64,000 bases of DNA. Origin: Selaginella moellendorffii. Lineage: Eukaryota > Plantae > Lycopodiophyta. The first letter of the stretch is position 1; each line of letters begins with the position of its first letter. The stretch lies in assembly GCF_000143415.4 (NCBI RefSeq), contig NW_003314283.1, positions 799,955 through 863,954 on the forward strand, read 5' to 3'. The notes under the pieces were generated by a model, which made no database searches, was not told where the DNA came from, and saw only the letters and a list, made by a program, of their open reading frames with translations. A program made the translations under genes and the position numbers. Of this stretch, positions 1 through 19,262 are shown one piece after another.

Positions 1-702
1 GTGCAAAGCCGCTGGTCTCTTGTGCGGTGATGAAGATCATGAGCTCTTTCAGCACCACCATGACCACCATCACGACAGGAGCGCTATGGAATCCTCCACT
101 TGAGATCTTGCCGAGAGGACCTTCTTCCAGCTCAAGACGCTTGTTGGTGCCAAGAACATACAGGTGCCACCGCCGCTGTGCTGGGAAAACTCCATCCCTG
201 TGAGTAAACAACTCCATCTGCTGCTAGAGCCTGCGCTTGCATCCATGAATCTGTCCCAGCTCCTGAGCCAGTCTCCATTTGCAGTGACGAGCAAGGATAG
301 CCTGGCGATATGCTGGTATCAAGCATGAGACCAACGCTTGTCACATCTCGGCAAAGTCAGGCCTCTTCGACCCTCCACAAGCTCGACTTGAAGTATACGG
401 TCAACACTCTGGAGTTTTATCCAAACAAGCCATTCCAGGTGGTGGAGACGAGCGTGGTGGCTGCAAATGGATATCTGGCCTGTCATCCATGACTTTCCCA
501 TTCGCCATCTTCATGTGCCACACAATACCGAACAGTCTCGTGTTGGAGGTGGATCTACTGAGAAGTTCTTCCAAAAACACGAAGCGTGCCATGGTGTATG
601 GATACCTCTGATTTTGCGCCTTCTCACATCTCTTTTAAGATTCTTAATACCAAGCGAGAGGTTTGTCACTGGCTTCCTACTTCTCATCTTGTGTGGTATT
701 AA
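1..702 (+). pseudogene. BURP-domain gene, third copy, 5' part outside window, disrupted
   Basis: Colinear with 3923-4700. CGA>TGA stop at 101-103 plus several deletions/frameshifts. Still ends ...CHWLPTSHLVWY* (TAA 700-702). Confidence 0.85.
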
Positions 703-1169
703 GCACCAAGCCTGAATGCTAGCGTGATTATATAGTAGAGTGTGATCACTAGGAGAATAAGGATTATGTGACTCTCCATGCCTTAAACGTCTTTTAATGA
801 GCCATCCTGAGGCTGAGGATCTTCTTCCCAGCGAAAGAAGAAGACGTGATGCTGAGCGTCCACTAGATCTCTTATGAGGACCACAACGGAGGGCCATCCC
901 AGCGAAGTGGTGGCAACGAGCAAAGTCTAGGAATCCACATCATTGTATGGGGTGGAGTGCAGGCGCGCTGTGTCGCTTGTGTTGGTCTCTCCGCCTGGGC
1001 AGAGCGATGCCACACCCTGCGCTCGTGCTGGCACCTCCAATCCATCCGTGGACACCAAAGCTCTTGGTTAATAATCATTAAATTAAATTTGTTTATGATA
1101 AGCTTTAAGAATCGGGATTTGGCTGGAATAAAGATTGGCTTCCTTGCCATACCATACATTTGAGAACAT

Positions 1170-1385
1170 AACCTTGGTTCATTATAGTCGATGTTCTAAC
1201 TTGTCTGAATGATATATGTACTTCAGGCATCTACAGCAATTCAAATGTTCAAGGACAAAGGGGCCACATTGCAATCTCAGTCCTTGATTTTTAGCAACAA
1301 GGCATGGAGAGGCTCAAGACTCTCTAATGTACAGCCCATGCATAGCAAAACGAATACAAACCTTTTGCTCTTGTACCACAATTTC
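1170..1385 (+). pseudogene. Relic paralog of the repetitive peptide precursor
   Basis: Same intron 3' end (ctgaatgatatatgtacttcag) as the precursors, then ASTAIQMFKDKG (cf. AAAALRTLKDNE) and a single LLLY-H core-like motif. Exon 1 is degraded. Confidence 0.6.
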
Positions 1386-2686
1386 TCGCATGCACACCAT
1401 AGCCCTCACCTTGGCTCACCTCAAACCCATATTTTAATTACCACTAATGGCTCGTTATTTTTGGTTTGCTTAGATATATTTAGAATATGCTTAGATATTC
1501 TAAGATATTCTACCATTTAACAGTTGTTATTCATTTAAATAATCTTGTATTTATAATTTATAAACATTTAAAAACCCTTTCTAGTATATTCATTTTTATT
1601 CTATCATCTAATGGTTTTGTGTTCATAAATTACAAACATGCTTATAATTATAAACTTTATTTTGGATTAATAAGTAATAATAAAACTACTATTAAGTAAA
1701 CCAAGCATTGCTACTCTCAGTTCAATGAGACAAAGTTTAAGAAATGTCATTTCTAATCAGTGTTTAATGTTAATTTTTTTATTAAAAAAGTAACCATTTT
1801 GTTGAGGTACCCCTCTTTCTCATTGTTGCCATCTTCTGGATTTTCATAAAACCACTACAAGGAGTTAGGGTTTGGCGTTCTGTCTTTTAGGTTTTGTAAC
1901 AAATTAGTGTATTTTCCATTTGACAGAATATTTGGTCAACAGTCGTTGCTATATGTGCGGGCCCCATGAATTGCAACTCACACTTTTTACATACAAAATT
2001 CATATTAACCTTTAAGTTAAAAGGATCCACATTGACAAATTTGTAACAACCTCAATGGAGGAGAACTCTCAGAAGGGAGACACCATTCCCATCATTTCTC
2101 CTAATACACAATGATTAGCATTTTAACATTAATGTCTAATAGTATGCAAATGTCTCAATCTAGACAAGTCATTAGGTGCTACCTTACATAAGTATATTAG
2201 AATATAAACCACCGTGATATATCAGAAACTAAATTGCATAAAAAATAATAAAATGAAAGCAAACCACGTTCACAACAAATTATTAATACTAATGCCTCTT
2301 TTTTTAATTAAATTATTTGATTTTTAAATTGTGCTAGAGTTTATGGTTCATGCACCTAAGAAAAATGTTACTTTCTACATGAAGATGTCTACATATTTAT
2401 CTATGAAGAATGAGATTAGAAATAGATAGAAATGTTTCCTTATGAGATTATAGGGTATTATTTGAATGCTTACAAATAAAATATAAGCTTGATTCTGTTA
2501 ATAAGTTTTTAAGAAAACCTTTTCTGATTTCAAAGGGTTTTTTTTAATTGTATTTTATTTGTGTCTTTTTTATTGTAAGGCTCTACTTTAAACTTCATAT
2601 TCTTATTATCTTAATACAGTAGAGCTTTGCAAAATATCAACGGTATATAGTAAGAGATCTTTGTCTCCTAGCATAAAGGATCTTAG

Positions 2687-3322
2687 TCAAACTTCACTTT
2701 CCAGGAAGGACTCGGGATTTGCCTGCTTCGCTTCCTTGTTATAGAAGAAAAAGGCCTCGGGATTAGCCTGCTTTACTTCCTTGTTATAGAAGACGAAGGA
2801 CTCAGGATTTGCTTGCTTTTCTTCCCTATTTGCTTGCTTCGCTTCCTTGTTATAGAAGACGAAGGACTCTGGATTTGCCTGCTTTACTTCCTTGTTATAG
2901 AAGACGAAGGACTCGGGATTTGCCTGCTTCACTTCCTTGTTATAGAAGACGAAGGCCTCGGGATTAGCCTGCTTCACTTCCTTGTTATAGAAGACGAAGG
3001 ACTCAGGATTTTCTTGCTTTTCTTCCTTATTTGCTTGCTTCGCTTCCTTGTCATACAAGAGGATGGACTCGGGATTTGCCTGCTTCGCTTCCTTGTTATA
3101 CAAGAAGAACGACTCGGGATTTGCCTGCTTCGCTTCCTTGTCATACAAGAGGATGGACTCGGGATTTGCCTGCTTTGCTTCATTGGTGTACATTACCTCT
3201 CCAGGCACTTGCTTTTCATTGTCCTTGAGTGTACGTAGTGCTGCAGCTGCCTGAAGTACATATATCATTCAGAAAACTTAGAAGCAGAGATTGATCTCAC
3301 CGTGAAAAACAAGAAGACTGTA
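2687..3322 (-). CDS. Repetitive secreted peptide precursor A (putative burpitide/cyclopeptide alkaloid precursor); start codon in the N gap
   Basis: Exon 1 partial 3301->3322 (..TVFLFFT), 50-nt GT-AG intron 3251-3300, exon 2 2687-3250. 15-aa repeats E(A/V)KQANPE(S/A)-xxxY-(N/D)K. Cores in order: ILLY, FFLY, ILLY, FVFY x5, FFFY. Confidence 0.85.
2705..3180. repeat. 45-nt coding tandem repeat of precursor A
   Basis: Unit gactcgggatttgcctgcttcgcttccttgttatagaagacgaag, with two 18-nt linker-only insertions. Confidence 0.95.
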
Positions 3323-3619
3323 NNNNNNNNNNNNNNNNNNNNNNNNNNNNNNNNNNNNNNNNNNNNNNNNNNNNNNNNNNNNNNNNNNNNNNNNNNNNNN
3401 NNNNNNNNNNNNNNNNNNNNNNNNNNNNNNNNNNNNNNNNNNNNNNNNNNNNNNNNNNNNNNNNNNNNNNNNNNNNNNNNNNNNNNNNNNNNNNNNNNNN
3501 NNNNNNNNNNNNNNNNNNNNNNNNNNNNNNNNNNNNNNNNNNNNNNNNNNNNNNNNNNNNNNNNNNNNNNNNNNNNNNNNNNNNNNNNNNNNNNNNNNNN
3601 NNNNNNNNNNNNNNNNNNN
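3323..3619. other. Assembly gap (N run)
   Basis: Run of Ns hiding the precursor A start codon and most of the shared promoter. Confidence 1.
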
Positions 3620-3694
3620 AAATACTGAACAAGTGGAAACATCACACCCACAAGAGTTCATATTATAATTATAGACTTTGCAATTCCAGAACTC

Positions 3695-4700
3695 ATGGCG
3701 GACACTTTGTTGGTTCTCATGTTCCTGGCATTATGTGTGATAAGCTTCACGAATTTCATAACTCTTCGAATCAAATCCAACTGATTGTGCTCTCCGCCAG
3801 GGATACTTGGAGGGATTCCAACTTCCACGCTCCATTCGTGAGAGGCTATCGCCCCTTGACGACGCTTCAGCGCTGCACATCAAGCAGGAACTCCAAGCTT
3901 CCAGCAGGATATCACACGAGTCGTGCAAAGCCGCTGGTCTCTTGTGCGGTGATGAACATCACTCCCTTCGTCAGCTTTTTCACCACCACCATGACCATCA
4001 CGACAGGAGCGCCATGGAATCCTCCACTCGAGATCTCGCCCAGAGGACCTTCTTTCAGCTCAAGACGCTTGTTGGTGCCAAGAACATACAGTTGCCACCG
4101 CCACTGCGCTGGGACAACTCCATCCCTGTGAGTAAATTCCTTCATCCGCTACTAGAGCCTGTGCTTGCGTCCATGAATCTGTCCCAGCTCCTGTCCACCA
4201 TGCACTTCTCGAGCCAGTCTCCATTCGCAGCGACGAGCAAGGATAGCCTGGAAATGTGCTCCTCCCACGGGGGGATCAAGCACGAGATCAAGGCTTGTCA
4301 CGTCTCGGCAAAGTCCATCCTGGATCAGGCCTCTTCGACCCTCCACAAGCTCGAGTTGAAGTATGTGGCCAACACTCTGGAGTTTGATCCGAACGAACCA
4401 TTCCAGGTGGTAGAGACGAGGGTGGTGGCTGCAGATGGATCTCTGGCCTGTCACCCCATGACTTTCCCATTCGCCATCTTCATGTGCCACACAATACCGA
4501 ACAGTCTCGTGTTGGAGGTGGATCTACTGAGAAGTTCTTCCAAGAAGACGAAGCCTGCCATGGTGAAAGTTCCTGCGGTTTGCCATATGGATACCTCTGA
4601 TTTCGCGCCTTCTCATATCTCTTTTAAGATTCTTAACACCAGGCCCGGCGAGGGAGAGGTTTGTCACTGGCTTCCTACTTCTCATCTCGTGTGGTATTAA
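3695..4700 (+). CDS. Stand-alone BURP-domain protein A (putative copper-dependent peptide cyclase); intron-1 donor mutated
   Basis: Signal-peptide exon MADTLLVLMFLALCV 3695-3739, exon 2 3801-4700. FF motif, then CH-x10-CH-x30-CH-x25-CH-x8-W. The donor reads AT at 3740 where copy B has GT. Confidence 0.85.
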
Positions 4701-5029
4701 GCTCCAAGCCTGAATGCTAGAGTGAATATATAGTAAAGTTTGATAACAAGGAGAATAAGAATTATGTGGCACTCCATGCCTCAACCGTCTTTTAATGAGC
4801 CAGCTTGAGACTGAGGATCTTCTTCGCAGCGAAAGAAGAAGACGTGATCGACTCCAAGCTGAGCGTCCACTAGATCTCTCATGAGGACCACAAAGGAGGG
4901 AGGGCCACAGTAATCCACATCTTTGTATGGGGCCGAGCTTGGGGGACATCCGTGGACACCATAGTTTGGAGCCAGATTGTTATAAAAAGCTCCTGGTTAA
5001 TAGCATTATATTATGATTCTTCCCAGGTT

Positions 5030-5140
5030 TTACCAGAAGAAAGAATTGGGATTTGGCTGCTTGGATCCTTCCATACCAGAACAAAGCTTCAGGATTTGGC
5101 TTCCTTGCCATGCCAGAAGAACGACTCAGGTTTTGGGAAC
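5030..5140 (-). pseudogene. Relic precursor repeats with Trp-containing cores
   Basis: Minus strand reads PKPES-FFWH-GKEA / KPNPEA-LFWY-G / KQPNPNS-FFW* across frameshifts. Confidence 0.7.
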
Positions 5141-5163
5141 ATAACATTTTGATAAAAAAAACC

Positions 5164-5409
5164 ATGGCTTGGTTCATTACAGTGCAATCTCAGTCCTTGA
5201 TTTCTAGCAACAACTTCAATGTACACCAAGAGAGCCTTAATATATTATACACTTTTCTCAACTTTGCAGATCTCAACTTTGCAGAATATCAACTTTTTAA
5301 AATCTCAACAGATCTCAACTTTGCAGATCTCAACTTCGCAGAATATCAAGTTTTAAAATCTCAACAGATCTCATCAGAAATCAACTTTGCAGACAACGCT
5401 GTAAATTAA
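5164..5409 (+). other. Short ORF starting MAWFITV with LNFA(D/E) repeats (copy A)
   Basis: The first 7 codons match precursor exon 1 (MAWLITV). Followed by the 15-nt repeat ctcaactttgcagat. Confidence 0.35.
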
Positions 5410-5574
5410 GAGATCCTTGTCTTCTAGCATAAATCGCAACTGGTGTCATTCAATCATCCACGTGAAACATCACTCTCCAGCAAGTTTTCAATAACACTTT
5501 TGCAGACAAAGTTTAACAATGACGTCGTACTTGTTTTGGTATATTTCTACTTTAACTATAGACTTGGACTAACG

Positions 5575-6342
5575 CCGGACACTTGTTTGGTTCTCGTATT
5601 ATGTGTATTAAGATTGACAACTCTTACAATCAAATCAAAACGATTGTTTACGAGATTCCATCTTCCACTATGACGCTTCAGCTCTGGCTATCAAGCAAGA
5701 AATCGAAGCTTCCGGCAGGATGTGACGTGAGTCAGTCTATTGTGCAGTGATGAACATCACTCCCTTTGTCAGCTCTTTCACCGATTCAGCGAAAGTGAAT
5801 CATTTTCTGTACATTGGACCCAAACATTTTTCCACTTTGCACAACTCTGTGGGGATAATAGGTTTTTGCATATTTGAAGGTAAGAGAGAGTGATTTTAAA
5901 ATTTGGACATTCTTCAAACCCCGAGTGCAACCATTTCTGAAAAATCCTAAAGAATATTGAACCAAATGATGACGTCATTATTTCGCCTTTTTGATTCCGG
6001 ACGAACGTTTGGTGCAAGGATAACCTGGCGATGTCCCAAGTCGCCGGGATCAAGCACCAGATCAAGTCTTATCACGTCTCCACAAAGTCCACTTCGACCC
6101 TCCCAAGCTCGAGTTGGACACTCCAAACGAATTATTCTAGGTGGTGGTGGCTGCATCGCCTGTCACCCCATACTTTCCCATTCACCATCTTCATGTGGCA
6201 CACGATACGGGAGAAGTTCTTCCAAGAAGACGAAGCCTGCCACGGTGAAAGCTCCAGTGGTTTGTCTTATGATTTCGAACCTTCTCACATCTCTTTTAAG
6301 ATTCTGGCCCGGCGAGGTACTTCTCATCTCGTGTGGTATTAA
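5575..6342 (+). pseudogene. Degenerate BURP-domain paralog
   Basis: Fragments GIKHQIKSYHVSTKS, ACHP..FPFTIFMWHTI, PSHISFKIL..TSHLVWY*. Many frameshifts; CH motifs partly lost. Confidence 0.85.
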
Positions 6343-6655
6343 GCTCCAAGCCTGCCAGGAAATGGAATGCATGATCGAAGCAACTACATAAAATTACCTT
6401 GAGCGGTAATCCCTTGTGCGTGTGAGATCGATCACAAGGAAAATAAAGACGTCGTTGTTCGTTTATCTCTTTGGATAGTTCCAACGCTAATCGAAAATAG
6501 ATTGTGGAATAGAGTTCTCTTAGAGAGCGGCTACAAGGCAAACAAGGATAAATTTCTTCCAAGAGGTATAAATGCTTGCGCGAACCAGTCGACACCCCGT
6601 AACAGAATTAGATACGTTGTTTCTGTCAAAGTTTCATTTCACTTATTTTAGATAC

Positions 6656-7985
6656 TTACGTGTTTGATTTCTTCACCTGTGGAAAGAAAAAAAAGATCAA
6701 ACAAAGAGAAAGAAGCGAACATTCAGTACCTTCTTCAGGTATAACTTATGGAACTTGAGCGCTTTTTGGCACGCTCGGTATGCGTCTATCTTGCCGCTCA
6801 TATTGTTCAGAGCCTGCGACGCATATTGTTACCAGGGAAAATGAGGAAAAAAAGGAAAAGCATTAAACTTTTCCTCACCCTCACGACTTCGTCCAGGCCT
6901 TGAATTCTCTTTATAAACTTGGATCGTAGCAGCACCAAGATCCCGGCTACAAAGAAAACTGCCAGGGACGGATGCTCGTTGAGGGCTCTTGGCGATCCAT
7001 ACTTAATGTTCCGCTTTGCAAATCTACCTCCAGCTCTATAGTCCGGCTGTACGTTGTCAATGTGACCATCTGGGGACTCCATGTAGAGAATTTGAACTCG
7101 AAAGCCCACATCATCTACAAAGAAAGAAAAACTCGCGTGGGCGAAAGAACATCAACATTTCACAACGGTTGGACTTACCTTCCAGAGGCTGAGCGTATCA
7201 ACGACCGAAAACTCCCGGCGAAAGTTAACCATGAGCATTCGAAACGCAAAAACATAGTTGCTCCCTCCAAGTGCCTCTACAAAAAAAGGTCGGCAAAGAC
7301 CTTCATCTTCGAAATCCTCACCTAGAGTTCTATGAAGCTTTGGATCGATTACTCGCATGGCAGCTGCGAGGAAGGAGAGCTCCTTCTGAACCCCCATCAT
7401 CTTATTCGTGCACCTGAAATTTTCCCGCTTGCCAACATCAAACGTGATAAACTTGGTACTAAGCGATATAAAATCTTGAGAAGCGCTTTGCAGAAAACGT
7501 ACCACTCGACGCATCAGGCACTTGAAGCACCAAAAGGCGTCAGCCTCGTCCGGGAAAAGGAGCACCATCGGCGAGCAAAGATCGCTCATACCTTGACAGT
7601 AGCCAACCTCCTCGTCGATCCAAGCGTACACTGCCAGGATGTCCCAGAGCTTTCCCAAGTTCTTGGGATCCTCGTAAAACTCTAAAACTCTATCCGTGCG
7701 AACTACATCCAGTCCTGCAAAGCGAAAGTTATGAAAAATAATCATACCAATCTGGTGGAGGAGGACTTTCCACTGGACAATCTTTGCGCTCGGCGATGGA
7801 TCCAGCACTCCATTTATTGTCTGCTCTTCAATGGATTCTGCTAATACTTGGACAGAAAGTGAAAAGCCCGAAGCAAACAAAGAAGTAACCACCTGGGTTA
7901 TTCTCCTCCATGGAAACTCCGTCGGCATTCATTCGCGGCGATATCACAACTTCACCACTTCCAACGGCCGCATCCATTCGTTTAC
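6656..7985 (-). pseudogene. TBC-domain RabGAP, 5'-truncated copy
   Basis: GLDVVRTDR, GYCQGMSDLCSP and FAFRMLMVNFRREFS motifs. Lacks the ~600 bp of 5' exons present in copy B and has small deletions. Confidence 0.8.
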
Positions 7986-8103
7986 ACACTCTACACGCTC
8001 TAAACTCTCGTTAAGTAATCGTACGAATATGCTCCATTCTTTGCTCCAGTTCGAATCGCGTAGCTAACGTTTAATTTTAATTCCACATTGTAACTATATT
8101 GCC

Positions 8104-9710
8104 ATGGACAAAGCCCAGTGCGTGGAGCTCATTCGATCGTGCAAAAGCCTCCCAATGGCCCAGGAGATCCACAAACGCATCCAGGCGAATCCACCACTCC
8201 ACGAGAGCCTCTTTGTCTACTGTTTAACCAGTTTGGCAGTCTCGTAAATGCCCGAAGCGTGTTTGATCGCATCGAGAACAAGGATGTTTTCTCGCTGGTT
8301 CTTATGCTCTGCGGCTACTCTCGCAGCGGGCAAGTTTCCAATGCAAAAGCCATCTTTGATTCCATGCCCGAAAAGAATCTTACAAGCTGGAACGCTATGA
8401 TGGCAGCATATGCCAAGAATGGGTATATGGACGAGGCAGAACTACTGTTTCAAGAGATGCCGTTTCACGATGCCGTGTCATGCAACACGCTCATAGCTGC
8501 ACACTCGCAAAGAGGGAATTTGGATACTGCGAATGAGATCTTTGATGACATGCTTTTTAAAACTCTACCATGCTGGAATGCCATGCTGTCTGCATATGCC
8601 ACAGGCTGGCATCTTGTACAAGCAAGACAGACATTTCACTCGATGCCTGCTCGAAATCTGATCTCTTGGACATTATTCTTAAACGCACTAATCATGGAGG
8701 ATGATCTTCAAATGACTAGAAGTGTTTTAGCGAAATGCCCTGCTGGAATCTGTTTGCCTGTAACTCAGTACTTTCCGCATATGCCCGAAAGGGGAATCTT
8801 CTCGAAGCCATGCTAACCTTTGACACAATGCTCGAGAGGGATATAATCACTTACACAAACATGCTGGAAGCTTTCATCCACAACGGTTGCCTCTTTGAAG
8901 CCAGCAATTTGTTCTCGCGGATGCCATAGCGGGATCTTGTGGCCTACACCGTAATGGAATCGGCCTATGCTCAAAAGGGCGAGCTCGAGAGAGCCGAGGC
9001 CATCTTCAACTCCATGCCGCAGCGTGATCTGGTCGCTTGGAACGCCATGATCCGGGGCTTACTCCCAACACGGCCGAGTCGAGCAAGCAAAGTTTCTCTT
9101 TGATTCCATGGCCGAGAGAAACTTGGTCTTCTGGACCTCAATGCTCACGGCTTACACAATAAGTGGCTACTTCTCGCAAGCAGAGCAAAACTCCGTCTCG
9201 TGGAATGCCATCCTTTGCATGTATGCTCAGCACGGCCATTTGAGCTCCGCAAGGAAGATTTTCGATGCCATGCCCGAGCAAGGAGTGGTATCATGGAGCG
9301 CCATGCTCGCTGCCCACGTAAGAAACTTGTCCTCTTCCCGTGCTCTCGAGCTCTTTGACGAGATGAAAGCTTTGCATTGTCCCGACGAAGCTAGCTTCTT
9401 CTCAGCTATGGTTTCGTTTGGACAGCAACGCTGCATCTCCAGAGCCAAGTCTTGCTTTGGTTCCATGGTGGCCGATATGAAGTGGCGCCATCAAAGCAGC
9501 ACTACTCTTGCATGGTGGATTTGCTCGTTCGATCTGGGAGAAGTTTGGAGGCCGAGGAACTTGTGTTTGCCATGCCTTTTAAGCCCAGTAACTTGGAATG
9601 GTCGTGCTTGCTGCGTGAAAGAAACTCCAGTTCGATGTTAATCACCAGAGGCAAGATCAAGTTCCTCGGATGGAGCGGTTTACGTGCTGCTTGCCAATGC
9701 ATTAACTTGA
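8104..9710 (+). pseudogene. PLS-type PPR gene, disrupted copy of 17598-19262
   Basis: Near-identical to the intact copy but with frameshifts and a CAG>TAG stop near 8927. Confidence 0.9.
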
Positions 9711-10136
9711 AAGCTAATATGAAACCTGTACATTAAAAAGATGGCTCATTTCAAGTTTTGCTATTGTGCCTCTATGTCTCCTCCAGTTTGGGTTGCCACA
9801 CGGAAGAGGGCTGTGGTCGTTCTATGAGGCTGATGACCCCAATGCTTCTCCGCTTGCTCTTGCTCAATGGAGGTTTTTGTTCAAGATAGACGCATCTATA
9901 CTAGTAATACTAGCACCTTTATACAAAAAGATGCAAAGAAGCTAGTTATTAATATTAGTGCTTGCTTCCTTGTTTCAAAAACTTGAGCGTCCACTAGATC
10001 TCTACCACAAAGGAGGGCCATCCCAGCGAAGTGGTGGCAATGAACAAAGCCTAGGAATGCTGGCACCTCCAATCCATCCGTGGACACCAAAGCTCTTGGT
10101 TAATAATCATCAAAGTAAATCCGTTTATACCCTCAT

Positions 10137-10230
10137 TTATGATAAGCTTTTGCTCCTATACCAAAAGAAAGAATCGGGATTTGGCTGCTCATACCAGAAC
10201 AAAGCATTGGGATTGGCTTCCGTGCCATGT
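10137..10230 (-). pseudogene. Relic precursor repeats with LFWY and FFWY cores
   Basis: In one frame: EANPNA-LFWY-EQPNPDS-FFWY-RSK. Confidence 0.7.
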
Positions 10231-10239
10231 TCTAACTTG

Positions 10240-10390
10240 TCTGAATGATATATGTACTTCAGGCATCTACAGCACTTCAAATGCTCAAGGACAAAGGGGC
10301 CACACTGCAATCTCAGTCCTTGATTTCTAGCAACAAGGTAATGTACGCATAGAAAAACGAATACACACCTTTTGCTCTTGTACCACAATG
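10240..10390 (+). pseudogene. Relic precursor paralog (copy B of 1170-1385)
   Basis: Acceptor ...gtacttcag, then ASTALQMLKDKGATLQSQSLISSNKVMYA*, then frameshifted TNTHLLLLYHN. Confidence 0.6.
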
Positions 10391-10724
10391 GAGCCTTTCT
10401 CACATGCACACCACAGCCCTCAAACCCATATTTCAATTATCACTACCCACCCTGCCCCAGGCTTGAGATCGGGGCTGGGTTCTTTATTTTTATTATTATA
10501 GATTACTATTTTATTAATTTTTCTTAAATATCAAGAAAGAAGTTTAAGAAATGTCACTCTTAATCTTTGTTTCTAATCAGTGTTTAATGTTAATTTTATT
10601 TATTAAAAAGGCAACTTTGCCATCTTTTTGGATTCATAAAACCGCTACGAGGAAGTTTTGTAGCGCCCCTTTTACACCCCAAGCATTTGCATTGGTTGTG
10701 GCTAAATGCAACACTTTAATGCCA

Positions 10725-10841
10725 TTTAGGGCCTAATGGCGCCGGTGGGCATTTTAGGCCCAGGTGGCGTGCGCTAGAGCCCCGGCTATTTGGCCCCCAA
10801 CGGTGCCCGTCTATTCGGCTATTGCGCCACCAAGCCCTAAT
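10725..10841. mobile_element. Possible MITE-like GC-rich insertion specific to unit B
   Basis: Imperfect inverted ends ttagggcctaatggcgc / gcgccaccaagccctaa. Absent from the matching unit A region (~1860-1905). Confidence 0.35.
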
Positions 10842-11645
10842 AAAAAATTTAAAAATTAAGAAAAAGTTCAGTGTATTTTACATTTGACAGAATATTCTGT
10901 CAACAGTGTGGACTTGGCTCCCTATACCATGAATTGCAACTCACACTTTTTACATACAAAATTCATATTATCCTTTAAGTTAAAAGGATCCACATTGACA
11001 AATCTGTAACAACCTCAATGGAGGAGAACTCTCACAAGGGAGACACCATTCCCCATCATTTCTCCTAATACACAATGGTTAGCATTTTAACATTAATGTC
11101 CAATAGTAAGCAATTGCTCAATCTAAACAAGTCATTAGGTGCTACTTTACATATGCTAAATAGTATTAATATTTTGTTGTGAACGTGGTTTGCTTTCATT
11201 TTTATTATTTTTTATGCAATTTAGTTTTTGATATGTCACAGTGGTTTACTAATGCCTCTTTTTGTTAATTAAATTATTTGATTTTAAAATTGTGCTAAAG
11301 TTTATGGTTCGTTTGCTCCTAAGAAAAATTTTACTTTCTACATAAAGATGTCTACATATTTATATATGAAGAATGAGATTAGAGATAGATAGAAATGTTT
11401 CCTTGTGAGATTATAGGGTATTATTTGAATGCTTACAAATAAAATATAAGCTTGATTCTGTTTATAAAACCAATCAATGACATGCTGGGGTAACATGGTT
11501 AATTTAAACTGAATTATGTTTAAAGGTTAGAAGGACATTTTTCTGATTCGAAAGGGTTTTATTTTTTTTATTGTATTTTATTATCTCAATACATTAGAGA
11601 TTTGCAAAATATGAACGCAAGAGATCTTTGTCTCCTAGTTCTTAG

Positions 11646-12208
11646 TCAAACGTCACTTTCGAGGAAGGATTGGGGATTTGCCTGCTTCGCTTCCATGTTA
11701 TACAAGAGGATGGACTCGGGATTTGCCTGCTTCGCTTCCTTGTGATACAAGAGGATGGACTCGGGATTTGCCTGCTTCGCTTCCTTGTTATACAAGAGGA
11801 TGGACTCGGGATTTGCCTGCTTCGCTTCCTTGTCATACAAGAGGATGGACTCGGGATTTGCCTGCTTCGCTTCCTTGTCATACAAGAGGATGGACTCGGG
11901 ATTTGCCTGCTTCGCTTCCTTGTTATACAAGAAGAACGACTCGGGATTTGCCTGCTTCGCTTCCTTGTCATACAAGAGGATGGACTCGGGATTTGCCCGC
12001 TTCGTTTCCTTGTTATACAAGAGGATGGACTCGGGATTTGCCTGCTTTGCTTCATTGGTGTACATTACCTCTCCAGGCACTTGCTTTTCATTGTCCTTGA
12101 GTGTACGTAGTGCTGCAGCTGCCTGAAGTACATATATCATTCAGAAAACTTAGAAGCAGAGATTGATCTCACCGTGAAACACAAGAGGACTGTAATGAGC
12201 CACGCCAT
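11646..12208 (-). CDS. Repetitive secreted peptide precursor B, 170 aa (putative burpitide/cyclopeptide alkaloid precursor)
   Basis: join(12173-12208, 11646-12122) with a 50-nt GT-AG intron 12123-12172. Signal peptide MAWLITVLLCFTAAAA. Eight 15-aa repeats with cores ILLY x7 and FFLY x1. Confidence 0.9.
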
Positions 12209-12487
12209 GGTTTCTATGAAAATGTGGTGTTCTTGGATGTCCTTTTATAGTAAGGCTCTACTTTAAACTTCGTATTCTTATTATCTTAATACATTAGAGC
12301 TATCAAAATATCAACGCTGTATAGTAAAAGATCAGGATCTTCTTGGTCAGACGTCACTTTCCAGCAAGTTTTCAATGAAAATTTAAGTTCGTCCTTATCT
12401 CTTATACATAGAAAAATACTGAACAAGTGAAACATCACACCAACACAAGTTCATATTATAATTATAGACTTTGCAATTCCAGAACTC
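12209..12487. promoter_or_regulatory. 279-bp divergent (bidirectional) promoter region between precursor B and BURP B
   Basis: Start codons at 12208 (-) and 12488 (+). TATA-like ctataaaagg on the minus strand at 12241-12250. Confidence 0.6.
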
Positions 12488-13493
12488 ATGGCGGACACTT
12501 TGTTGGTTCTCATGTTCCTGGCATTATGTGTGGTAAGCTTCACGAATTTCATAACTCTTCGAATCAAATCCAACTGATTGTGCTCTCCGCCAGGGATACT
12601 TGGAGGGATTCCAACTTCCACGCTCCATTCGTGAGAGGCTATCGCCCCTTGACGACGCTTCAGCGCTGCACATCAAGCAGGAACTCCAAGCTTCCAGCAG
12701 GATATCACACGAGTCGTGCAAAGCCGCTGGTCTCTTGTGCGGTGATGAACATCACTCCCTTCGTCAGCTTTTTCACCACCACCATGACCATCACGACAGG
12801 AGCGCCATGGAATCCTCCACTCGAGATCTCGCCCAGAGGACCTTCTTTCAGCTCAAGACGCTTGTTGGTGCCAAGAACATACAGTTGCCACCGCCACTGC
12901 GCTGGGACAACTCCATCCCTGTGAGTAAATTCCTTCATCCGCTACTAGAGCCTGTGCTTGCGTCCATGAATCTGTCCCAGCTCCTGTCCACCATGCACTT
13001 CTCGAGCCAGTCTCCATTCGCAGCGACGAGCAAGGATAGCCTGGAAATGTGCTCCTCCCACGGGGGGATCAAGCACGAGATCAAGGCTTGTCACGTCTCG
13101 GCAAAGTCCATCCTGGATCAGGCCTCTTCGACCCTCCACAAGCTCGAGTTGAAGTATGTGGCCAACACTCTGGAGTTTGATCCGAACGAACCATTCCAGG
13201 TGGTAGAGACGAGGGTGGTGGCTGCAGATGGATCTCTGGCCTGTCACCCCATGACTTTCCCATTCGCCATCTTCATGTGCCACACAATACCGAACAGTCT
13301 CGTGTTGGAGGTGGATCTACTGAGAAGTTCTTCCAAGAAGACGAAGCCTGCCATGGTGAAAGTTCCTGCGGTTTGCCATATGGATACCTCTGATTTCGCG
13401 CCTTCTCATATCTCTTTTAAGATTCTTAACACCAGGCCCGGCGAGGGAGAGGTTTGTCACTGGCTTCCTACTTCTCATCTCGTGTGGTATTAA
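12488..13493 (+). CDS. Stand-alone BURP-domain protein B (putative copper-dependent peptide cyclase), 314 aa, intact
   Basis: join(12488-12532, 12594-13493) with a 61-nt GT-AG intron. Signal peptide, His-rich HHHHDHHD, FF start motif, four CH dipeptides and terminal W. No core repeats within the protein. Confidence 0.92.
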
Positions 13494-13809
13494 GCTCCAA
13501 GCCTGAATGCTAGAGTGAATGTATAGTAAAGTTTGATCACAAGGAGAATAACGATTGTGTGGCACTCCATGCCTCAAACGTCTTTTAATGAGCCAGCTTG
13601 AGACTGAGGATCTTCTTCGCAGCGCAAGAAAGAAGACGTGATCGACTCCAAGCTGAGCGTCCACTAGATCTCTCATGAGGACCACAAAGGAGGGAGGGCC
13701 ACAGTAATTCACATTTTTGTACGGGGTCGAGCTTGAGGGACATCCGTGGACACCATAGTTTGGAGCCAGATTGTTATCCAAAGCTCCTGGCTAATAGCAT
13801 TATATTGTG

Positions 13810-13900
13810 ATGCTTCCCAAAGAAAGAATTGGGATTTGGCTGCTTGCCATCCTTCCATACCGGAATAAAGCCAGAAGAAAGACTCAGGCTTTGGGAACGT
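13810..13900 (-). pseudogene. Relic Trp-core precursor repeats (copy B of 5030-5140)
   Basis: PKPES-FFWL.. and DGKQPNPNS-FFG fragments. Confidence 0.55.
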
Positions 13901-13920
13901 AACATTTTGATAAAAGAACC

Positions 13921-14196
13921 ATGGTTTGGTTCATTACAGTGCAATCTCAGTCCTTGATTTCTAGCAACAACTTCAATGTACACCAAGAAAGCCTTAATAT
14001 ATTGTACACGTTTCTCAACTTTGCAGAACATCAACTTTTTAAAAGCTCAACAGATTTCAACCTTGCAGGTCTCAACTTTGCAGATCTCAACTTTGCAGGT
14101 TTCAACTTTGCAACTCTCAACTTTGCAGGTCTCAACTTTGCAGGTCTCAACTTTTCAGATCTCAACTTTGCAGGTCTTAACTTTGCAGAATATTAA
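13921..14196 (+). other. Short ORF MVWFITV... with expanded LNFAG pentapeptide repeats (copy B)
   Basis: 15-nt tandem repeat ctcaactttgcaggt at ~14050-14190, open in frame with a precursor-like start. Confidence 0.35.
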
Positions 14197-14379
14197 CGCT
14201 GTAAATTAAGAGATCCTTGTCTTCTAGCATAAGCGCAACTGGTGTCATTCAATCATCCATGTGAAGCATCACTTTCCAGCAAGTTTTCAATGACAATTTT
14301 GCAGACAAAGTTTAACAACGACGTCTACTCGTGCTCTACTTGTTTGGTATATTTCTACTTTAACTATAGACTTGGACTC

Positions 14380-15198
14380 ACGGTGTTTGGTTCTCGTATT
14401 ATGTGTCTTAAGATTGACAACTCTTACAATCAAATCAAAACGATTGTTCACGAGATTCCAGCTTCCACCCTCAATCCATGAGACCCTTACGACGTTTCAG
14501 CTCTGGCTACCAGGCAAGAAATCAAAGCTTCCCGCAGGATGTGACGTGAGTCGTGCAAAGCCGCCGGTCTATTGTGTGGTGATGAACATCACTCCCTTCA
14601 TCAGCTCTTTCACCAGCCAGATTCAGCGAAAGTGAATAATTTTTTGTACATTGGACCCAAAGATTTTTCCACTTTGCACAACTCTGTGGGGATAATAGGT
14701 TTTTGCACATTTGAAGGTAAGAATGCACGCTTGAGAGAGTGATTTTAAAACTTGGACATTCTTCAAACCCTGAGGGCAACCATTTCTGAAAAATCCTAAA
14801 GAATATTATCCCACGGACTTTCATTTTTCTTAACACAACCAAATGATGACGTCATTACTTTGCCTTTTTGATTTGGCGATGTCCCAAGTCGCCGGGATCA
14901 AGCACCAGATCAAGTCTTATCACGTCTCCACAAAGTCCACTTCGACCCTTCCCAAGCTCGAGTTGGTGGAGACGAAGGTGGTGGCTGCATCGCCTGTCAC
15001 CCCATGACTTTCCCATTCGCCATCTTCATGTGGCACACGATACGGGAGAAGTTCTTCCAAGAAGACGAAGCCTGCCACGGTGAAAGTTTGTCTTATGATT
15101 TCGAACCTTCTCACATCTCTTTTAAGATTCTCAACACCAGGCCCAGCGTGGTAGAGGTCTGTCACTGGCTTCCTACTTCTCATCTCGTGTGGTATTAA
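14380..15198 (+). pseudogene. Degenerate BURP-domain paralog (unit B)
   Basis: ACHPMTFPFAIFMWHTI...PSHISFKILNTRPSVVEVCHWLPTSHLVWY*. Frameshifted upstream. Confidence 0.85.
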
Positions 15199-15526
15199 GC
15201 TCCAAGCCTGCCAGGAAATGGAATGCATGATCGAAGCAACTACACAAAATTACCTTGAGTGGTAATCCCTTGTGAGTGTGAGATCGAAAATAAAGACGTT
15301 TATCGTTGTTCGTTTATCTCTTTGGATAGTTCCAACGCTAATCGAAAATAGATTGTGGAATAGAGTTCTCTTAGAGAGCGGCTACAAGGCAAACAAGGAT
15401 AAATTTCTTCCGAGGTATAAATGCTTGCGAGAACCAGTCGACACCCCGTAACAGAATTAGATACGAGATTTGCCCCGACCTTTGTTTCTGTCAAAGTTTC
15501 ATTTCACTTATTTTAGATACTTGTTA

Positions 15527-17413
15527 CTATGTGTTCGATTTCTTCACCTGTGGAAAGAAAAAAAGATCAAACAAAGAGAAAGAAGCGAACATTCAGTACC
15601 TTCTTCAGGTATAACTTATGGAACTTGAGCGCTTTTTGGCACGCTCGGTATGCGTCTATCTTGCCGCTCATATCGTTCAAAGCCTGCGACGTATATTGTT
15701 ACCAGGGAAAATGAGGAAAAAAGGAAAGCATTAAACTGTTCCTCACCCTCACGACTTCGTCCAGGCCTTGAATTCTCTTTATAAACTTGGATCGTAGCAG
15801 CACCAAGATCCCGGCTACAAAGAAAACTGCCAGGGACGGATGCTCGTTGAGGGCTCTTGGCGATCCATACTTAATGTTCCGCTTTGCAAATCTACCTCCA
15901 GCTCTATAGTCCGGCTGTGCGTTGTCAATGTGACCATCCGGGGACTCCATGTAGAGAATTTGAAGGTCGGGATGGTACTCGAAAGCCCACATCATCTACA
16001 AAGAAAGAAAAGCTCGCGTGGGCGAAAGAACATAAACATTTCACAACGGTTGGACTTACCTCCCAGAGGGTGAGCGTATCAACGAACGAAAACTCCCGGC
16101 GAAAGTTAACCATGAGCATTCGAAACGCAAAAATATAGTTGCTCCCTCCAAGTGCCTCTACAAAAAAAGGTCGGCAAAGACCTTCATCTTCGAAATCCTC
16201 ACCTAGAGTTCTATGAAGCTTTGGATCGATTACTCGCATGGCAGCTGCGAGGAAGGAGAGCTCCTTCTGAACCCCCATCATCTTATTCGTGCACCTGAAA
16301 TTTTCCCGCTTGCCAACATCAAACGTGATAAACTTCAATGAACGGTACTAAGCGATATAAAATCTTGAGAAGCGCTTTGCAAAAAACGTACCACTCGACG
16401 CATCAGGCACTTGAAGCACCAAAAGGCGTCAGCCTCGTCCGGGAAAAGGAGCACCATCGGCGAGCAAAGATCGCTCATACCTTGACAGTAGCCAACCTCC
16501 TCGTCGATCCAAGCGTACACTGCCAGGATGTCCCAGAGCTTTCCCAAGTTCTTGGGATCCTCGTAAAACTCTAAAACTCTATCCGTGCGAACTACATCCA
16601 GTCCTGCAAAGCGAAAGTGAGCACGCGAAACAGAAAAATAATCATACCAATCTGGTGGAGGAGAACTTTCCACTGGACAATCTTTGCGCTCGGCGATGGA
16701 TCCAGCACTCCATTTATTGTCTGCTCTTCAATGGATTCTGCTAATACTTGGACAGAAAGTGAAAAGCCCGAAGCAAACAAAGAAGTAACCACCTGGATTA
16801 TTCTCCTCCATGGAAACTCCGTCGGCATTCATTCGCGGCGATATCACAACTTCGCCACTTCCAACGGCCGCATCCATTCTCTTACACTCGGCCTTGAGCT
16901 TCAAGTATTTGTCACTGTAAAAACCAACGCGGTTTCTCTCGCAGATCAAATCCAATCGATAAAACAAGCCAAAGTATCTACCGTCGCGATTGACGAAGCT
17001 CTTCCCTTTCGGCAGCATTGCTGCCGGGGGAGTAAACACCCAAAAGAAACTCCCAGACGTGAGCGCGAATCTCCGACGCAACGCCCTACAGGAAAGAAGA
17101 AGAGACTTCGCTACTGGAAATGCAGCACAAGATTTACCCCTCTTTCGATGTGCCGAAGAACTCGCTTCACATTGAGCCGCCCTTGCGCGTCAAACGCAGC
17201 CCGCCATTTCTCCGCCGAGAGCTTCCTCCGCCTCCGCCTCTAAATCGATCAAACCACAGCTCAGATCGACACAAATCCAGCCGAGAATCCGTCACAAACC
17301 GGCACGGAGCTCGTCGCCACATCCTGACACTCGCTCCGGACCCTGTAAATCTCGGAATCATCCTCCATAGAGAAGCCTTGCCTCTGCTCGCTCGCGCAGG
17401 CCAGCAGCGGCAT
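15527..17413 (-). CDS. TBC-domain Rab GTPase-activating protein (multi-exon)
   Basis: LSAEKWRAAFD, VWEFLLG, LDVVRTDR, YCQGMSDL, FAFRMLMV.FRREFSF motifs; last exon VKKSNT*. The start codon is approximate. Confidence 0.85.
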
Positions 17414-17597: not shown

Positions 17598-19262
17598 ATG
17601 GACAAAGCCCAGTGCGTGGAGCTCATTCGATCGTGCAAAAGCCTCCCAATGGCCCAGGAGATCCACAAATGCATCCAGGCGAATCCACCACTCCCACCAC
17701 ACGAGAGCCTCTTTGTCTCCAACAATCTCCTCGCACTGTTTAACCAATTTGGCAGCCTCGTAAATGCCCGAAGCGTCTTTGATCGCATCGAGAACAAGGA
17801 TGTTTTCTCGCTGGTTCTTATGATCTGCGGCTACTCTCGCAGTGGGCAAGTTTCCAATGCAAAAGCCATTTTTGATTCCATACCCGAGAAGAATCTTACA
17901 AGCTGGAACACTATGGTGGCAGCATATGCCAAGAATGGGTATCTGGACGAGGCAGAAGTTTTGTTTCAAGAGATGCCATTTCATGATGCCGTGTCATGCA
18001 ACACGCTCATAGCTGCACACTCGCAAAGAGGGCATTTGGATACTGCAAAGGGGATCTTTGATGACATGCTTTTTAAAACTCTACCATGCTGGAATGCCAT
18101 GCTGTTTGCATATGCCACAGGTCGGGATCTTGTACAAGCAAGACAGACATTTCACTCAATGCCTGCTCGAAATCTGATCTCTTGGACATCATTCTTAAAC
18201 GCACTAATCATGGAGGAAGATCTTCAAATGACTAGAAAATGTTTTAACGAAATGCCCTGCTGGAATCTGTTTGCCTGTAACTCAGTACTTTCCGCATATG
18301 CCCGAAAGGGGAATCTTCTCGAAGCCATGCTAACCTTTGACACAATGCTCGAGAGGGATATAATCACTTACACAAACATGCTGGAAGCTTTCATCCACAA
18401 CGGTTGCCTCTTTGAAGCCAGCAATTTGTTCTCGCGGATGCCACAGCGGGATCTCGTGGCCTACACCGTAATGCAATCGGCCTACGCTCAAAACTGCGAG
18501 CTCGAGAGAGCCGAGGCCATCTTCAACTCCATGCCGCAGCGTGATCTGGTCGCTTGGAACGCCATGATCGGGGCTTACTCCCAACACGGCCGAGTCGAGC
18601 AAGCAAAGTTTCTCTTTGATTCCATGGCCGAGAGAAACTTGGTCTCCTGGACCTCAATGCTCACGGCTTACACAATAAGTGGCTACTTCTCGCAAGCAAA
18701 GCTCGTCTTTCTCGACATGTCCGAGCAAAACTCCGTCTCGTGGAATGCCATCCTTTGCATGTATGCTCAGCACGGCCATTTGAGCTCCGCAAGGAAGATT
18801 TTCGATGCCATGCCCGAGCAAGGAGTGGTATCATGGAGCGCCATGCTCGCTGCCCACGTGAGAAACTTGTCCTCTTCCCGTGCTCTCGAGCTCTTTGACG
18901 AGATGAAAGCTTTGCATTGTCCCGACGAAGCTTGCTTCTTCTCGGCTATGGTTTCGTTTGGGCAGCAAGGCTGCATCTCCAGAGCCAAGTCTTGCTTTGG
19001 TTCCATGGTGGCCGACTATGAAGTGGCGCCATCAAAGCAGCACTACTGTTGCATGGTGGATTTGCTCGTTCGATCTGGGAGAAGTTTGGAGGCCGAGGAA
19101 CTTGTGTTGGCCATGCCTTTTGAGCCCAGTAACTTGGAATGGTCGTGCTTGCTACGTGAAAGAAACTCCAGCTCGATGTTAATCACCAGAGGCAAGCATG
19201 CTTTAAGATCAAGTTCCTCAGATGGAGCGGTATACGTGCTGCTTGCCAATGCATTAACTTGA
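17598..19262 (+). CDS. PLS-class pentatricopeptide repeat protein with E-like C-terminus, 554 aa
   Basis: Intronless ORF of ~31-aa repeats (F..MP.RDLVAWNAMI.AY.Q.G) and a C-terminal HY.CMVDLL.RSG motif. Confidence 0.93.
   Translation: MDKAQCVELIRSCKSLPMAQEIHKCIQANPPLPPHESLFVSNNLLALFNQFGSLVNARSVFDRIENKDVFSLVLMICGYSRSGQVSNAKAIFDSIPEKNLTSWNTMVAAYAKNGYLDEAEVLFQEMPFHDAVSCNTLIAAHSQRGHLDTAKGIFDDMLFKTLPCWNAMLFAYATGRDLVQARQTFHSMPARNLISWTSFLNALIMEEDLQMTRKCFNEMPCWNLFACNSVLSAYARKGNLLEAMLTFDTMLERDIITYTNMLEAFIHNGCLFEASNLFSRMPQRDLVAYTVMQSAYAQNCELERAEAIFNSMPQRDLVAWNAMIGAYSQHGRVEQAKFLFDSMAERNLVSWTSMLTAYTISGYFSQAKLVFLDMSEQNSVSWNAILCMYAQHGHLSSARKIFDAMPEQGVVSWSAMLAAHVRNLSSSRALELFDEMKALHCPDEACFFSAMVSFGQQGCISRAKSCFGSMVADYEVAPSKQHYCCMVDLLVRSGRSLEAEELVLAMPFEPSNLEWSCLLRERNSSSMLITRGKHALRSSSSDGAVYVLLANALT

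Follow-up and report, generated by a model that had tools for sequence, protein, structure and literature searches.

The window analysed here is a 64,000-nucleotide (nt) stretch of the Selaginella moellendorffii genome (GL377587.1:799955-863954, assembly GCA_000143415.2), and it contains two cassettes, A and B, in each of which a gene for a repetitive peptide precursor lies on the opposite strand to a gene for a stand-alone BURP-domain protein. Burpitide pathways are called split when precursor and cyclase are encoded by separate, co-localized genes (PMC11253845). Cassette A, our main subject, has this arrangement, together with a multicore precursor in which a repeated linker alternates with a core ending in an aromatic residue. 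A second scaffold, GL377593.1, also holds members of the BURP cluster; 49 kb of it, merged, are referred to as alt, and its cassettes as alt1 to alt4.

Precursor A and its repeat units

Precursor A is read from the minus strand, where the open reading frame (ORF) at 2687-3268 translates into a protein with nine cores that end in tyrosine. Their order (ILLY, FFLY, ILLY, four FVFY, a further FVFY and FFFY) is the one reported in the initial annotation of this DNA, and the present translation bears it out. The nine units comprise 15 residues (45 nt) each and end in xxxY, with a linker of the form (N/D)KE(A/V)KQANPE(S/A) ahead of every core. Tandem Repeats Finder (TRF) returned the period of 45 nt together with higher-order periods of 111, 156 and 201 nt. 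The codons of the different cores are one step apart (ATC CTC TTG in ILLY, TTC GTC TTC in FVFY, TTC TTC TTG in FFLY and TTT TTC TTC in FFFY). A 'linker-only unit', KEEKQENPES, had also been noticed earlier. The sequence is indeed present, but it is in fact a 21-nt tandem duplication inside the linker (KEAKQAN/KEEKQEN; 3008..3049, minus strand; TRF period 21, two copies), and the gene contains a second duplication of this kind (2807-2846, minus strand, by TRF).

A splice joint in RNA contigs (3249>3300, cut +1) divides the gene into two exons. Exon 2, with the stop codon, occupies 2687..3250 (minus strand); its product starts with the last part of the signal peptide (AAAA), followed by a lead of 32 residues, the nine cores and the C-terminal tail FLESEV. 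It is preceded by an intron of 50 nt (3251..3300, minus strand), which has GT..AG ends (CT..AC as read on the plus strand) and recurs in copy B and in alt1-4. The last 22 of the 36 nt of exon 1 (..ITVFLFFT) lie at 3301..3322 (minus strand), as placed by alignment to alt1 and B, and this exon is of the FLFF type, like those of alt2-4.

The lead, AAAALRTLKDNEKQVPGEVMYTNEAKQANPES, has neither YW nor PMP. Angiosperm stand-alone precursors have been described as carrying an Ax6YWx7PMP motif after the signal peptide (PMC10107690; hidden Markov model of Lima et al., 2023), and this motif was not found in precursor A; a related LPxSIxxxLSPL stretch occurs in the BURP protein instead. We do not file the precursors as homologues of the angiosperm family; on their sequences, the two may work alike and have split independently. 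Pfam matches of the precursors (DUF1829 and others) all fell below the cut-offs and were dismissed as repeat noise.

The BURP genes and their product

The BURP gene of cassette A is read from the plus strand. Its exon 1 (3695..3739) encodes the signal peptide MADTLLVLMFLALCV, which is the same as the first 15 residues of the database protein P0001, and its end is marked by an RNA joint. A 61-nt intron (3740..3800), delimited by the six-copy alignment, is bounded by AT..AG as assembled, and exon 2 (3801..4700) contributes 299 codons and a stop, with a BURP domain that holds four CH motifs. Copy B is free of gaps and yields both gene models. Precursor B (11646..12208, minus strand) consists of exon 1 (12173-12208), encoding MAWLITVLLCFT, a 50-nt GT..AG intron (12123-12172) and exon 2 (11646-12122), which begins with AAAALRTLK; the joined exons give a signal peptide, and the cores are seven ILLY and one FFLY. 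BURP B (12488..13493, plus strand) has the same exon 1 product (12488-12532), a 61-nt GT..AG intron (12533-12593) and an exon 2 that begins with GYLEGF (12594-13493). Precursor and cyclase are thus separate genes on opposite strands, each with its own signal-peptide exon and its own intron.

The spliced BURP product is the annotated 314-residue protein P0001 (XP_024534238.1, XP_024534417.1), which the database names 'BURP domain-containing protein BNM2C-like [Selaginella moellendorffii]' and which NCBI assigns to both copies. Searches were run per exon or with P0001. The Pfam BURP profile (PF03181) matched at E=2.6e-43 over profile positions 2-215 of 216, and the CH motifs (C232H, C244H, C276H and C303H), of the kind that provides the copper-binding histidines of BURP cyclases, are spaced CH-x10-CH-x30-CH-x25-CH-x8-W. 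They align to those of PDB entry 8SY2 (BURP domain-containing protein; E=2e-8), which we take to be AhyBURP. The protein has no core repeats of its own. A word-indexed search with BURP exon 2 returned matches only from its own cluster. An exhaustive HMMER search of 1.8 billion representatives found the best match outside the cluster to be P0006 (39% identity over 217 residues), a fused, SkrBURP-like protein with the cores ILLYPSY, VLFYRSY, VLFYPSY, FLLYPY and FLFYPY, against which all four CH motifs are invariant.

Allelic scaffold and assembly gap

Genes of S. moellendorffii are represented by two haplotypes with separate accessions (PMC3442193). Three colinear matches join the window to alt: -6305..3322 to 29-9707 (99.04% identity), 3620-4943 to 9927-11249 (99.4%) and 4992-10227 to 11250-16479 (97.4%), and alt has no gap. 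Because this match to GL377593.1 is colinear and gap-free, the flanks of the 297 N at 3323..3619 can be read as continuous and ~219 nt apart, which is the length for which the gap stands in; copy B has 219 nt in the equivalent interval (12195-12413). The first 14 nt of the precursor A coding sequence, including the ATG, are lost in the gap, as are the precursor 5' untranslated region (UTR), the whole shared divergent promoter region and part of the BURP 5' flank. Judged by the sequence of allele alt1, in which both sides continue, the gap is benign. Downstream, one unbroken contig (3620-29940) contains both BURP genes and precursor B.

That A and B are haplotypes of one another was also considered, and is ruled out. 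Since A and B differ by 5-12% outside one exchanged tract, while alt1 is 99% identical to A, the sequence comparison identifies A and B as tandem paralogues and alt1 as the haplotype partner of A.

In copy B, a TATAAAAGG box lies at 12244-12252 (minus strand), ~40 nt upstream of the precursor ATG, within a 279-nt interval that is shared with the divergent BURP gene and is predicted to be a compact bidirectional promoter. The corresponding interval of copy A falls in the N gap.

Transcription

The RNA evidence comes from four runs of RNA-like Logan contigs from four studies; the contigs are k-mer unitigs and give no expression levels. Precursor A is covered without mismatch at 2535-2996 and 3146-3249 by contigs of runs from several studies, including the FVFY units (2796-2996) and a stretch of 3'UTR and C-terminus shared only by A and alt1 (2535-2734). 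The precursor joint (3249>3300, 50 nt skipped) is found in X1, X6 and X11, and the BURP joint (3738>3800, 61 nt skipped) in X1 and X6, where it is not assignable to A over B. RNA contigs continue past 3322 into ..CCATGGCGTGGCTCAT on the minus strand, for which paralogues with the same exon 1 are also a possible source. At position 2917, both alleles are present in X1. Furthermore, record 14 of X11 (2997-3065, one mismatch) spans ILLY-D, the long linker and the following F, a combination found only in A. Contigs of X1 and X11 also contain 4547-G, a marker of A and B only, and in one X11 contig it occurs together with a 3' flank of the A/alt1 type.

Two details of the assembled BURP 3' region may be added. 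At 4745 the assembly has A, and every RNA contig that covers this position (X1, X11 and X15) has C; and the 48 nt at 4944-4991 are absent from alt1 and from X1 and X15 contigs.

The cassette array and the mosaic precursor

The scaffold of the other haplotype carries four cassettes, and the window haplotype, as assembled, carries two. The precursor of alt1 reads ILLY, ILLY, FVFY, then four FVFY, a further FVFY and FFFY, and stands beside BURP protein P0003. The precursor of alt2 consists of 14 FVFY units with long linkers after units 1, 6 and 11 (BURP P0002), that of alt3 of eight ILLY units (BURP annotated with 314 residues, with a 1-nt deletion near the 3' end by alignment), and that of alt4, which is short, of FLFY and FVFY (BURP P0005). 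Pure precursor types do exist, therefore, as B and alt3 are essentially ILLY only and alt2 is all FVFY; this all-FVFY precursor is missing from the window haplotype as assembled.

Comparison of these sequences supports the view that precursor A is a mosaic, of ILLY type towards its 5' end and of FVFY type towards its 3' end. Over the FVFY-type part, A and alt1 are identical save for two substitutions (2917 and 3012). They differ in the patch at 3050-3145, where A has ILLY-D, FFLY-N and ILLY-D, and alt1 has ILLY-N (KETKR), ILLY-N and FVFY-N. A tract of 107 nt that makes up units 1-3 of A (3036..3142, minus strand) is identical to units 2-4 of B (11863-11969) and carries a synonymous TCG marker and the FFLY core, the latter limited to A and B. 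With pure types at hand, an exact copy of three B units at one end and an alt1-like remainder, the earlier suggestion of a chimera of two precursor types has held up. The switch from ILLY to FVFY lies inside unit 3 in A, but between units 2 and 3 in alt1. The further proposal that the long linker marks the recombination point had to be abandoned: the linker belongs to the FVFY-type higher-order repeat, the same long linkers recur periodically in the all-FVFY alt2, and alt1 switches one unit earlier, before the linker. We infer that the array evolves through ectopic exchange, in a direction that is itself read from these patterns, and such exchange would place the switch at different positions in the two haplotypes.

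Decayed copies are common in the array. BURP pseudogene fragments with broken frames and 31-79% identity to P0001 lie at 2-699, 5689-6339 and 14470-15195 (plus strand); precursor A has one upstream of it and every intact BURP gene one downstream, a placement from which it follows that each 8.8-kb unit contains an older, decayed cassette. Precursor-like remnants at 4980-5177, 10137-10436 and 13774-14034 (minus strand) contain NPEA-LFWY, NPNA-LFWY and NPDS-FFWY; they adjoin inverted pieces of precursor exon 1, intron and lead, and may be relics of a third core type. On the other haplotype, the alt3 BURP gene (L004:19897-20902) has a 1-nt deletion at the equivalent of window position 4608, which shifts the frame ahead of the last CH motif, and the short precursor of alt4 (L003, upstream of 10001; alt 37600-37920), with FLFY and FVFY as its only cores, is uncalled.

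Identical BURP genes and a probable exchanged tract

The initial annotation had pointed out that two BURP ORF translations of 297 residues are identical and had suggested that the enzyme stays fixed while its substrate diversifies. The ORFs (3807-4700 and 12600-13493) are identical both as protein and as DNA (0/894 differences), although the true exon 2 begins at 3801 and therefore has 299 codons. The stretch without any difference is longer still, and covers 987 nt (3741..4727, plus strand, against 12534-13520 of copy B, by pairwise comparison). In the 3' flank (4728-4942, 215 nt), A and B differ by ~6.5%; at a quarter of this rate ~16 differences would be expected in 987 nt, as against none seen (P ~1e-7). 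Furthermore, positions 11951-13551 of B, which take in the BURP gene, the 5' end of the precursor gene and what lies between them, are 99.75% identical to alt1, with the upstream array of B closest to alt3 and its downstream part allelic to alt4 at 98-100%. From its sequence, this ~1.6-kb tract of unit-1 type in B looks like the outcome of gene conversion or like a recombinant unit, and its origin from the co-assembly of reads of near-identical units is less likely. Thus, BURP A and BURP B would be identical because a tract of ~1.6 kb, comprising precursor 5' end, promoter and BURP gene, was homogenized between units. Unit B as a whole is a three-way mosaic, U3-like in its upstream array, U1-like at 11951-13551 and U4-allelic from ~15250 onwards.

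Irrespective of the tract, the four annotated BURP proteins that were aligned, which stand beside chimeric, all-FVFY and short precursors, differ by at most three residues, none of them in the CH motifs (three separate P0002, which stands beside the all-FVFY precursor, from P0001), and a fifth copy, beside the all-ILLY alt3, departs only by its 1-nt deletion near the 3' end. Across the six copies, 1.7% of the columns vary in the coding sequence and 7.8% of those in the 3' flank. From these comparisons, a single type of enzyme for many cores, kept by homogenization and constraint, is a fair inference. The notion of a fixed enzyme survives in that the BURP proteins are at most three residues apart, but the identity of A and B points to a recent exchanged tract or to an artefact rather than to selection alone.

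Such an artefact would consist in near-identical units having been co-assembled at the contig ends beside the gap, in which case the identity of the A and B BURP genes or the B-like patch of precursor A would be spurious and more units might exist. The patch at 3036-3142 does fall in the last 300 nt of contig 1, and the identical stretch starts 35-120 nt into contig 2, both next to the gap; the first 35 nt of contig 2 contain four oddities; the A at 4745 is contradicted by all covering RNA contigs, the window haplotype has two cassettes and the other scaffold four, and the mosaic B mixes sequence resembling three units. However, the 5' end of A is not just B sequence: it has an FLFF-type exon 1 and no B unit 1, and goes on into alt1-type sequence. 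The A-specific junction is spanned, with one mismatch, by an RNA unitig of an independent 2025 study, 4547-G is present in X1 and X11 RNA contigs, the gap-free allele alt1 is likewise chimeric, and a single contig holds BURP A together with the whole of cassette B. We regard assembly error as an improbable source of these features.

Position 3740 in the BURP A intron

The BURP copies are not strictly equal, as A carries a G>A change at the intron donor. In the six-copy alignment, position 3740 carries A in copy A only, the remaining five copies (B and alt1-4) having G; it is the sole difference between A and B from 3655 to 4727, and as the +1 base of the donor it turns GT into AT. By the sequence, read-through or use of a GT two bases upstream would shift the frame. 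The position sits 121 nt from the contig start, after four singleton differences at 3635-3654. Because it lies so close to the contig start, and because another A-only singleton, 4745-A, is contradicted by RNA contigs, 3740-A may be a contig-end error, and we consider it somewhat the less probable alternative that the base is real. No RNA contig reaches over 3740 (in spliced ones the intron is absent), and those that carry the joint end 34-38 nt upstream of it, before the A/B markers at 3635-3654 are reached.

If the change is real, cassette A could be half dead: BURP A would be a splicing-defective pseudogene, and precursor A would be served in trans by BURP B or others, if at all. The base is peculiar to this copy among six, both alternative readings break the frame, the assembled 3'UTR form of BURP A occurs in no RNA contig, decayed BURP and precursor copies are frequent in the array, and in coffee ArbB1 has been reported as a non-functional neighbour (PMC12186524). 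Against this stand the position of 3740 amid singletons near a contig end, the RNA contradiction at 4745, the X11 contig that joins 4547-G to an A/alt1-type 3' flank and so suggests an expressed A-type BURP, and the NCBI annotation of the same 314-residue product for both copies. A half-dead cassette is an unlikely outcome, but one with appreciably more in its favour than an assembly artefact.

Surroundings of the cassettes

Directly downstream of each BURP gene is a minisatellite with the 15-nt unit TCTCAACTTTGCAGA (5256-5373 and 13976-14200, plus strand); its copy number differs between units, and spurious ORFs of LNFAG repeats result. RabGAP-TBC and PPR genes are duplicated with each unit (7152-7928, minus; 8118-9641, plus; 15925-16338, minus; 17598-19262, plus). 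The PPR copy at 17598-19262 is intact, with an ORF of 554 amino acids, and that at 8118-9641 is in pieces. Nested, repeated retrotransposons of the Ty3/gypsy type (gag, reverse transcriptase, RNase H and integrase) lie at 22986-47694, and a second N gap is at 29941-30040. The 64-kb window contains no tailoring enzyme.

Discussion

The genes described here resemble the split cassettes of flowering plants in several ways. In ArbA2/ArbB2 of Coffea arabica, CamA1/CamB1 of Ceanothus americanus and ZjuPrec/ZjuBURP of jujube, a multicore precursor gene likewise adjoins a stand-alone BURP gene (PMC10107690, PMC12186524, PMC12871766). The cores there are also of four residues and end in tyrosine, with ILLY and FFFY found among those of CamA1 as well. 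Recognition by ArbB2 depends on a Pro at -3, a Ser at -1 and a single hydrophobic residue with charged neighbours (PMC12186524); the linkers of precursor A have Pro at -3 and Ser at -1, and at -8 they have A or V with Glu and Lys on either side; in sequence, they resemble the recognition features of the ArbA2 and CamA peptides. In the angiosperm systems one cyclase takes several cores, as we predict for S. moellendorffii. There are also differences. The host is a lycophyte, whereas the split system has been reported as nearly ubiquitous among eudicots (PMC10107690); the Ax6YWx7PMP motif is missing from precursor A; the recognition sequence is KEAKQANPES, as compared with KDFESKPGS in ArbA2 and KDFSVDPSGN in CamA1; the genes are head-to-head and ~280 nt apart; and FVFY is the dominant core, with Val at the presumed cross-link position.

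A second comparison is with SkrBURP of S. kraussiana, a member of the same genus, which gives rise to selanines A and B by closing a 14-membered ring between the Tyr oxygen and the beta-carbon of Leu (PMC11253845, PMC10349150). The nearest BURP relative of our protein, P0006, has the published SkrBURP cores, and the CH motifs are conserved. In SkrBURP, whose cores begin with ILLY, FLLY, FLFY or VLFY, they are part of the cyclase polypeptide and have 6-7 residues (xLxYPSY, xLxYPY), which allows a second ring. In contrast, the cores of S. moellendorffii are on a separate gene, have four residues and carry Leu, Phe or Val at position 2. Closest to cassette A are of course cassette B and the four on GL377593.1, with the same gene pair, lead peptide and introns and with cyclases at least 99% identical; among these, A is the mosaic member that passes from ILLY/FFLY to FVFY/FFFY.

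It could be argued that the repeat protein is an ordinary secreted, repetitive protein that lies by chance beside a BURP gene of other function, and not the precursor of a peptide made by the ribosome and modified after translation (RiPP). The pair has no known product, many BURP proteins are of unknown function, and the angiosperm motif (PMC10107690) is lacking. However, cores of the fused SkrBURP-type protein that is the nearest relative begin with ILLY and with FLFY, the gene pairing is preserved in all six units across both haplotypes, variation is concentrated in the four-residue cores while the linkers stay constant, and Pro(-3) and Ser(-1) match characterized substrates. A chance association of this kind seems very improbable indeed.

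Taken together, the evidence makes cassette A probably a true burpitide gene pair of the split, cyclopeptide-alkaloid type, one of several in a tandem array. Several observations weigh against this reading. Three of the nine cores of precursor A are preceded by NPEA, and thus by Ala at -1, and a Ser(-1)Ala change reduced the activity of ArbB2 (PMC12186524). A homologue search with precursor A exon 2 gave no match at E<=0.001 among 402 candidates, which is probably an effect of composition and uninformative on relatives. The start codon of precursor A is missing, swallowed by the gap, and BURP A would be splicing-defective, without canonical splicing, if 3740-A is real. Most RNA contigs are unable to tell A from its allele or paralogues, and those of the BURP 3'UTR lack the 48 nt after 4943, as does alt1, and read C at 4745, leaving the form assembled for A unconfirmed as transcribed. 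Finally, no cyclopeptide from S. moellendorffii is reported in the papers that were searched.

If cassette A is nevertheless a burpitide gene pair, the two-exon gene on the minus strand would supply a signal peptide, a short lead and nine xxxY cores behind linkers, and the divergent two-exon gene ~280 nt away a secreted, stand-alone BURP copper cyclase, as predicted. The cyclase would bind the linker in the secretory pathway and, by analogy, link the phenol oxygen of Tyr-4 with the beta-carbon of the Leu, Phe or Val at position 2. Rings of 14 members would result, which proteases would then release. The calculated [M+H]+ of the cyclized cores is 573.2708 for FVFY, 621.2708 for FFFY, 587.2864 for FFLY and 519.3177 for ILLY; the value of ~573.27 given earlier for cross-linked FVFY was correct. 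Cyclization at Val is proposed by analogy because published cyclases already accept several cores, as is the case for CamB1 (ILLY, FFFY and ILWY) and ArbB2 (PMC12186524). With Val at position 2, ArbB2 showed weak turnover and partly undefined products (PMC12186524). The initial annotation called Val-linked rings uncommon; Val is unusual as the dominant natural core residue, but it is not unprecedented, as a 2024 review lists it among the usual sites of the ether bridge (PMC11253845). Searches of the cyclopeptide-alkaloid literature for FVFY/FFLY and for hydroxyvaline returned nothing relevant.

More tentatively, a wider scenario may be sketched, which we hold to be possible though not yet probable. 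S. moellendorffii may use two separate genes to make 14-membered Tyr-O-C-beta(Val/Phe/Leu) cyclopeptides, and this route may have arisen by a split of a fused, Selaginella-type BURP, apart from the split in angiosperms; such an independent split from a fused ancestor is plausible. The locus would then amount to a natural shuffling of a core library, in which gene conversion keeps cyclase and promoter uniform while core arrays recombine, giving haplotype-specific repertoires (an all-FVFY gene on one haplotype only, and chimeras that switch at different units). The tolerance of these cyclases for multiple cores is already established, and the novelty here is a repertoire that is naturally dominated by Val. 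Also new are the mosaic precursor, the haplotype-specific switch point, the exchanged 1.6-kb tract and the difference at the donor site; otherwise, the advance is incremental.

If FVFY is cyclized, S. moellendorffii would possess a natural cyclase that prefers or tolerates the beta-carbon of Val, a tertiary C-H, as the site of the ether bridge, a substrate that ArbB2 handles poorly, and the enzyme could be useful for making cyclopeptide-alkaloid analogues. Furthermore, the array would illustrate how plant RiPP repertoires diversify, with enzyme and promoter homogenized and core arrays shuffled, as seen between the haplotypes of one individual. Finally, a split architecture in a lycophyte would extend this pathway beyond the flowering plants, and would make the origin of fused and split systems testable within a single genus.

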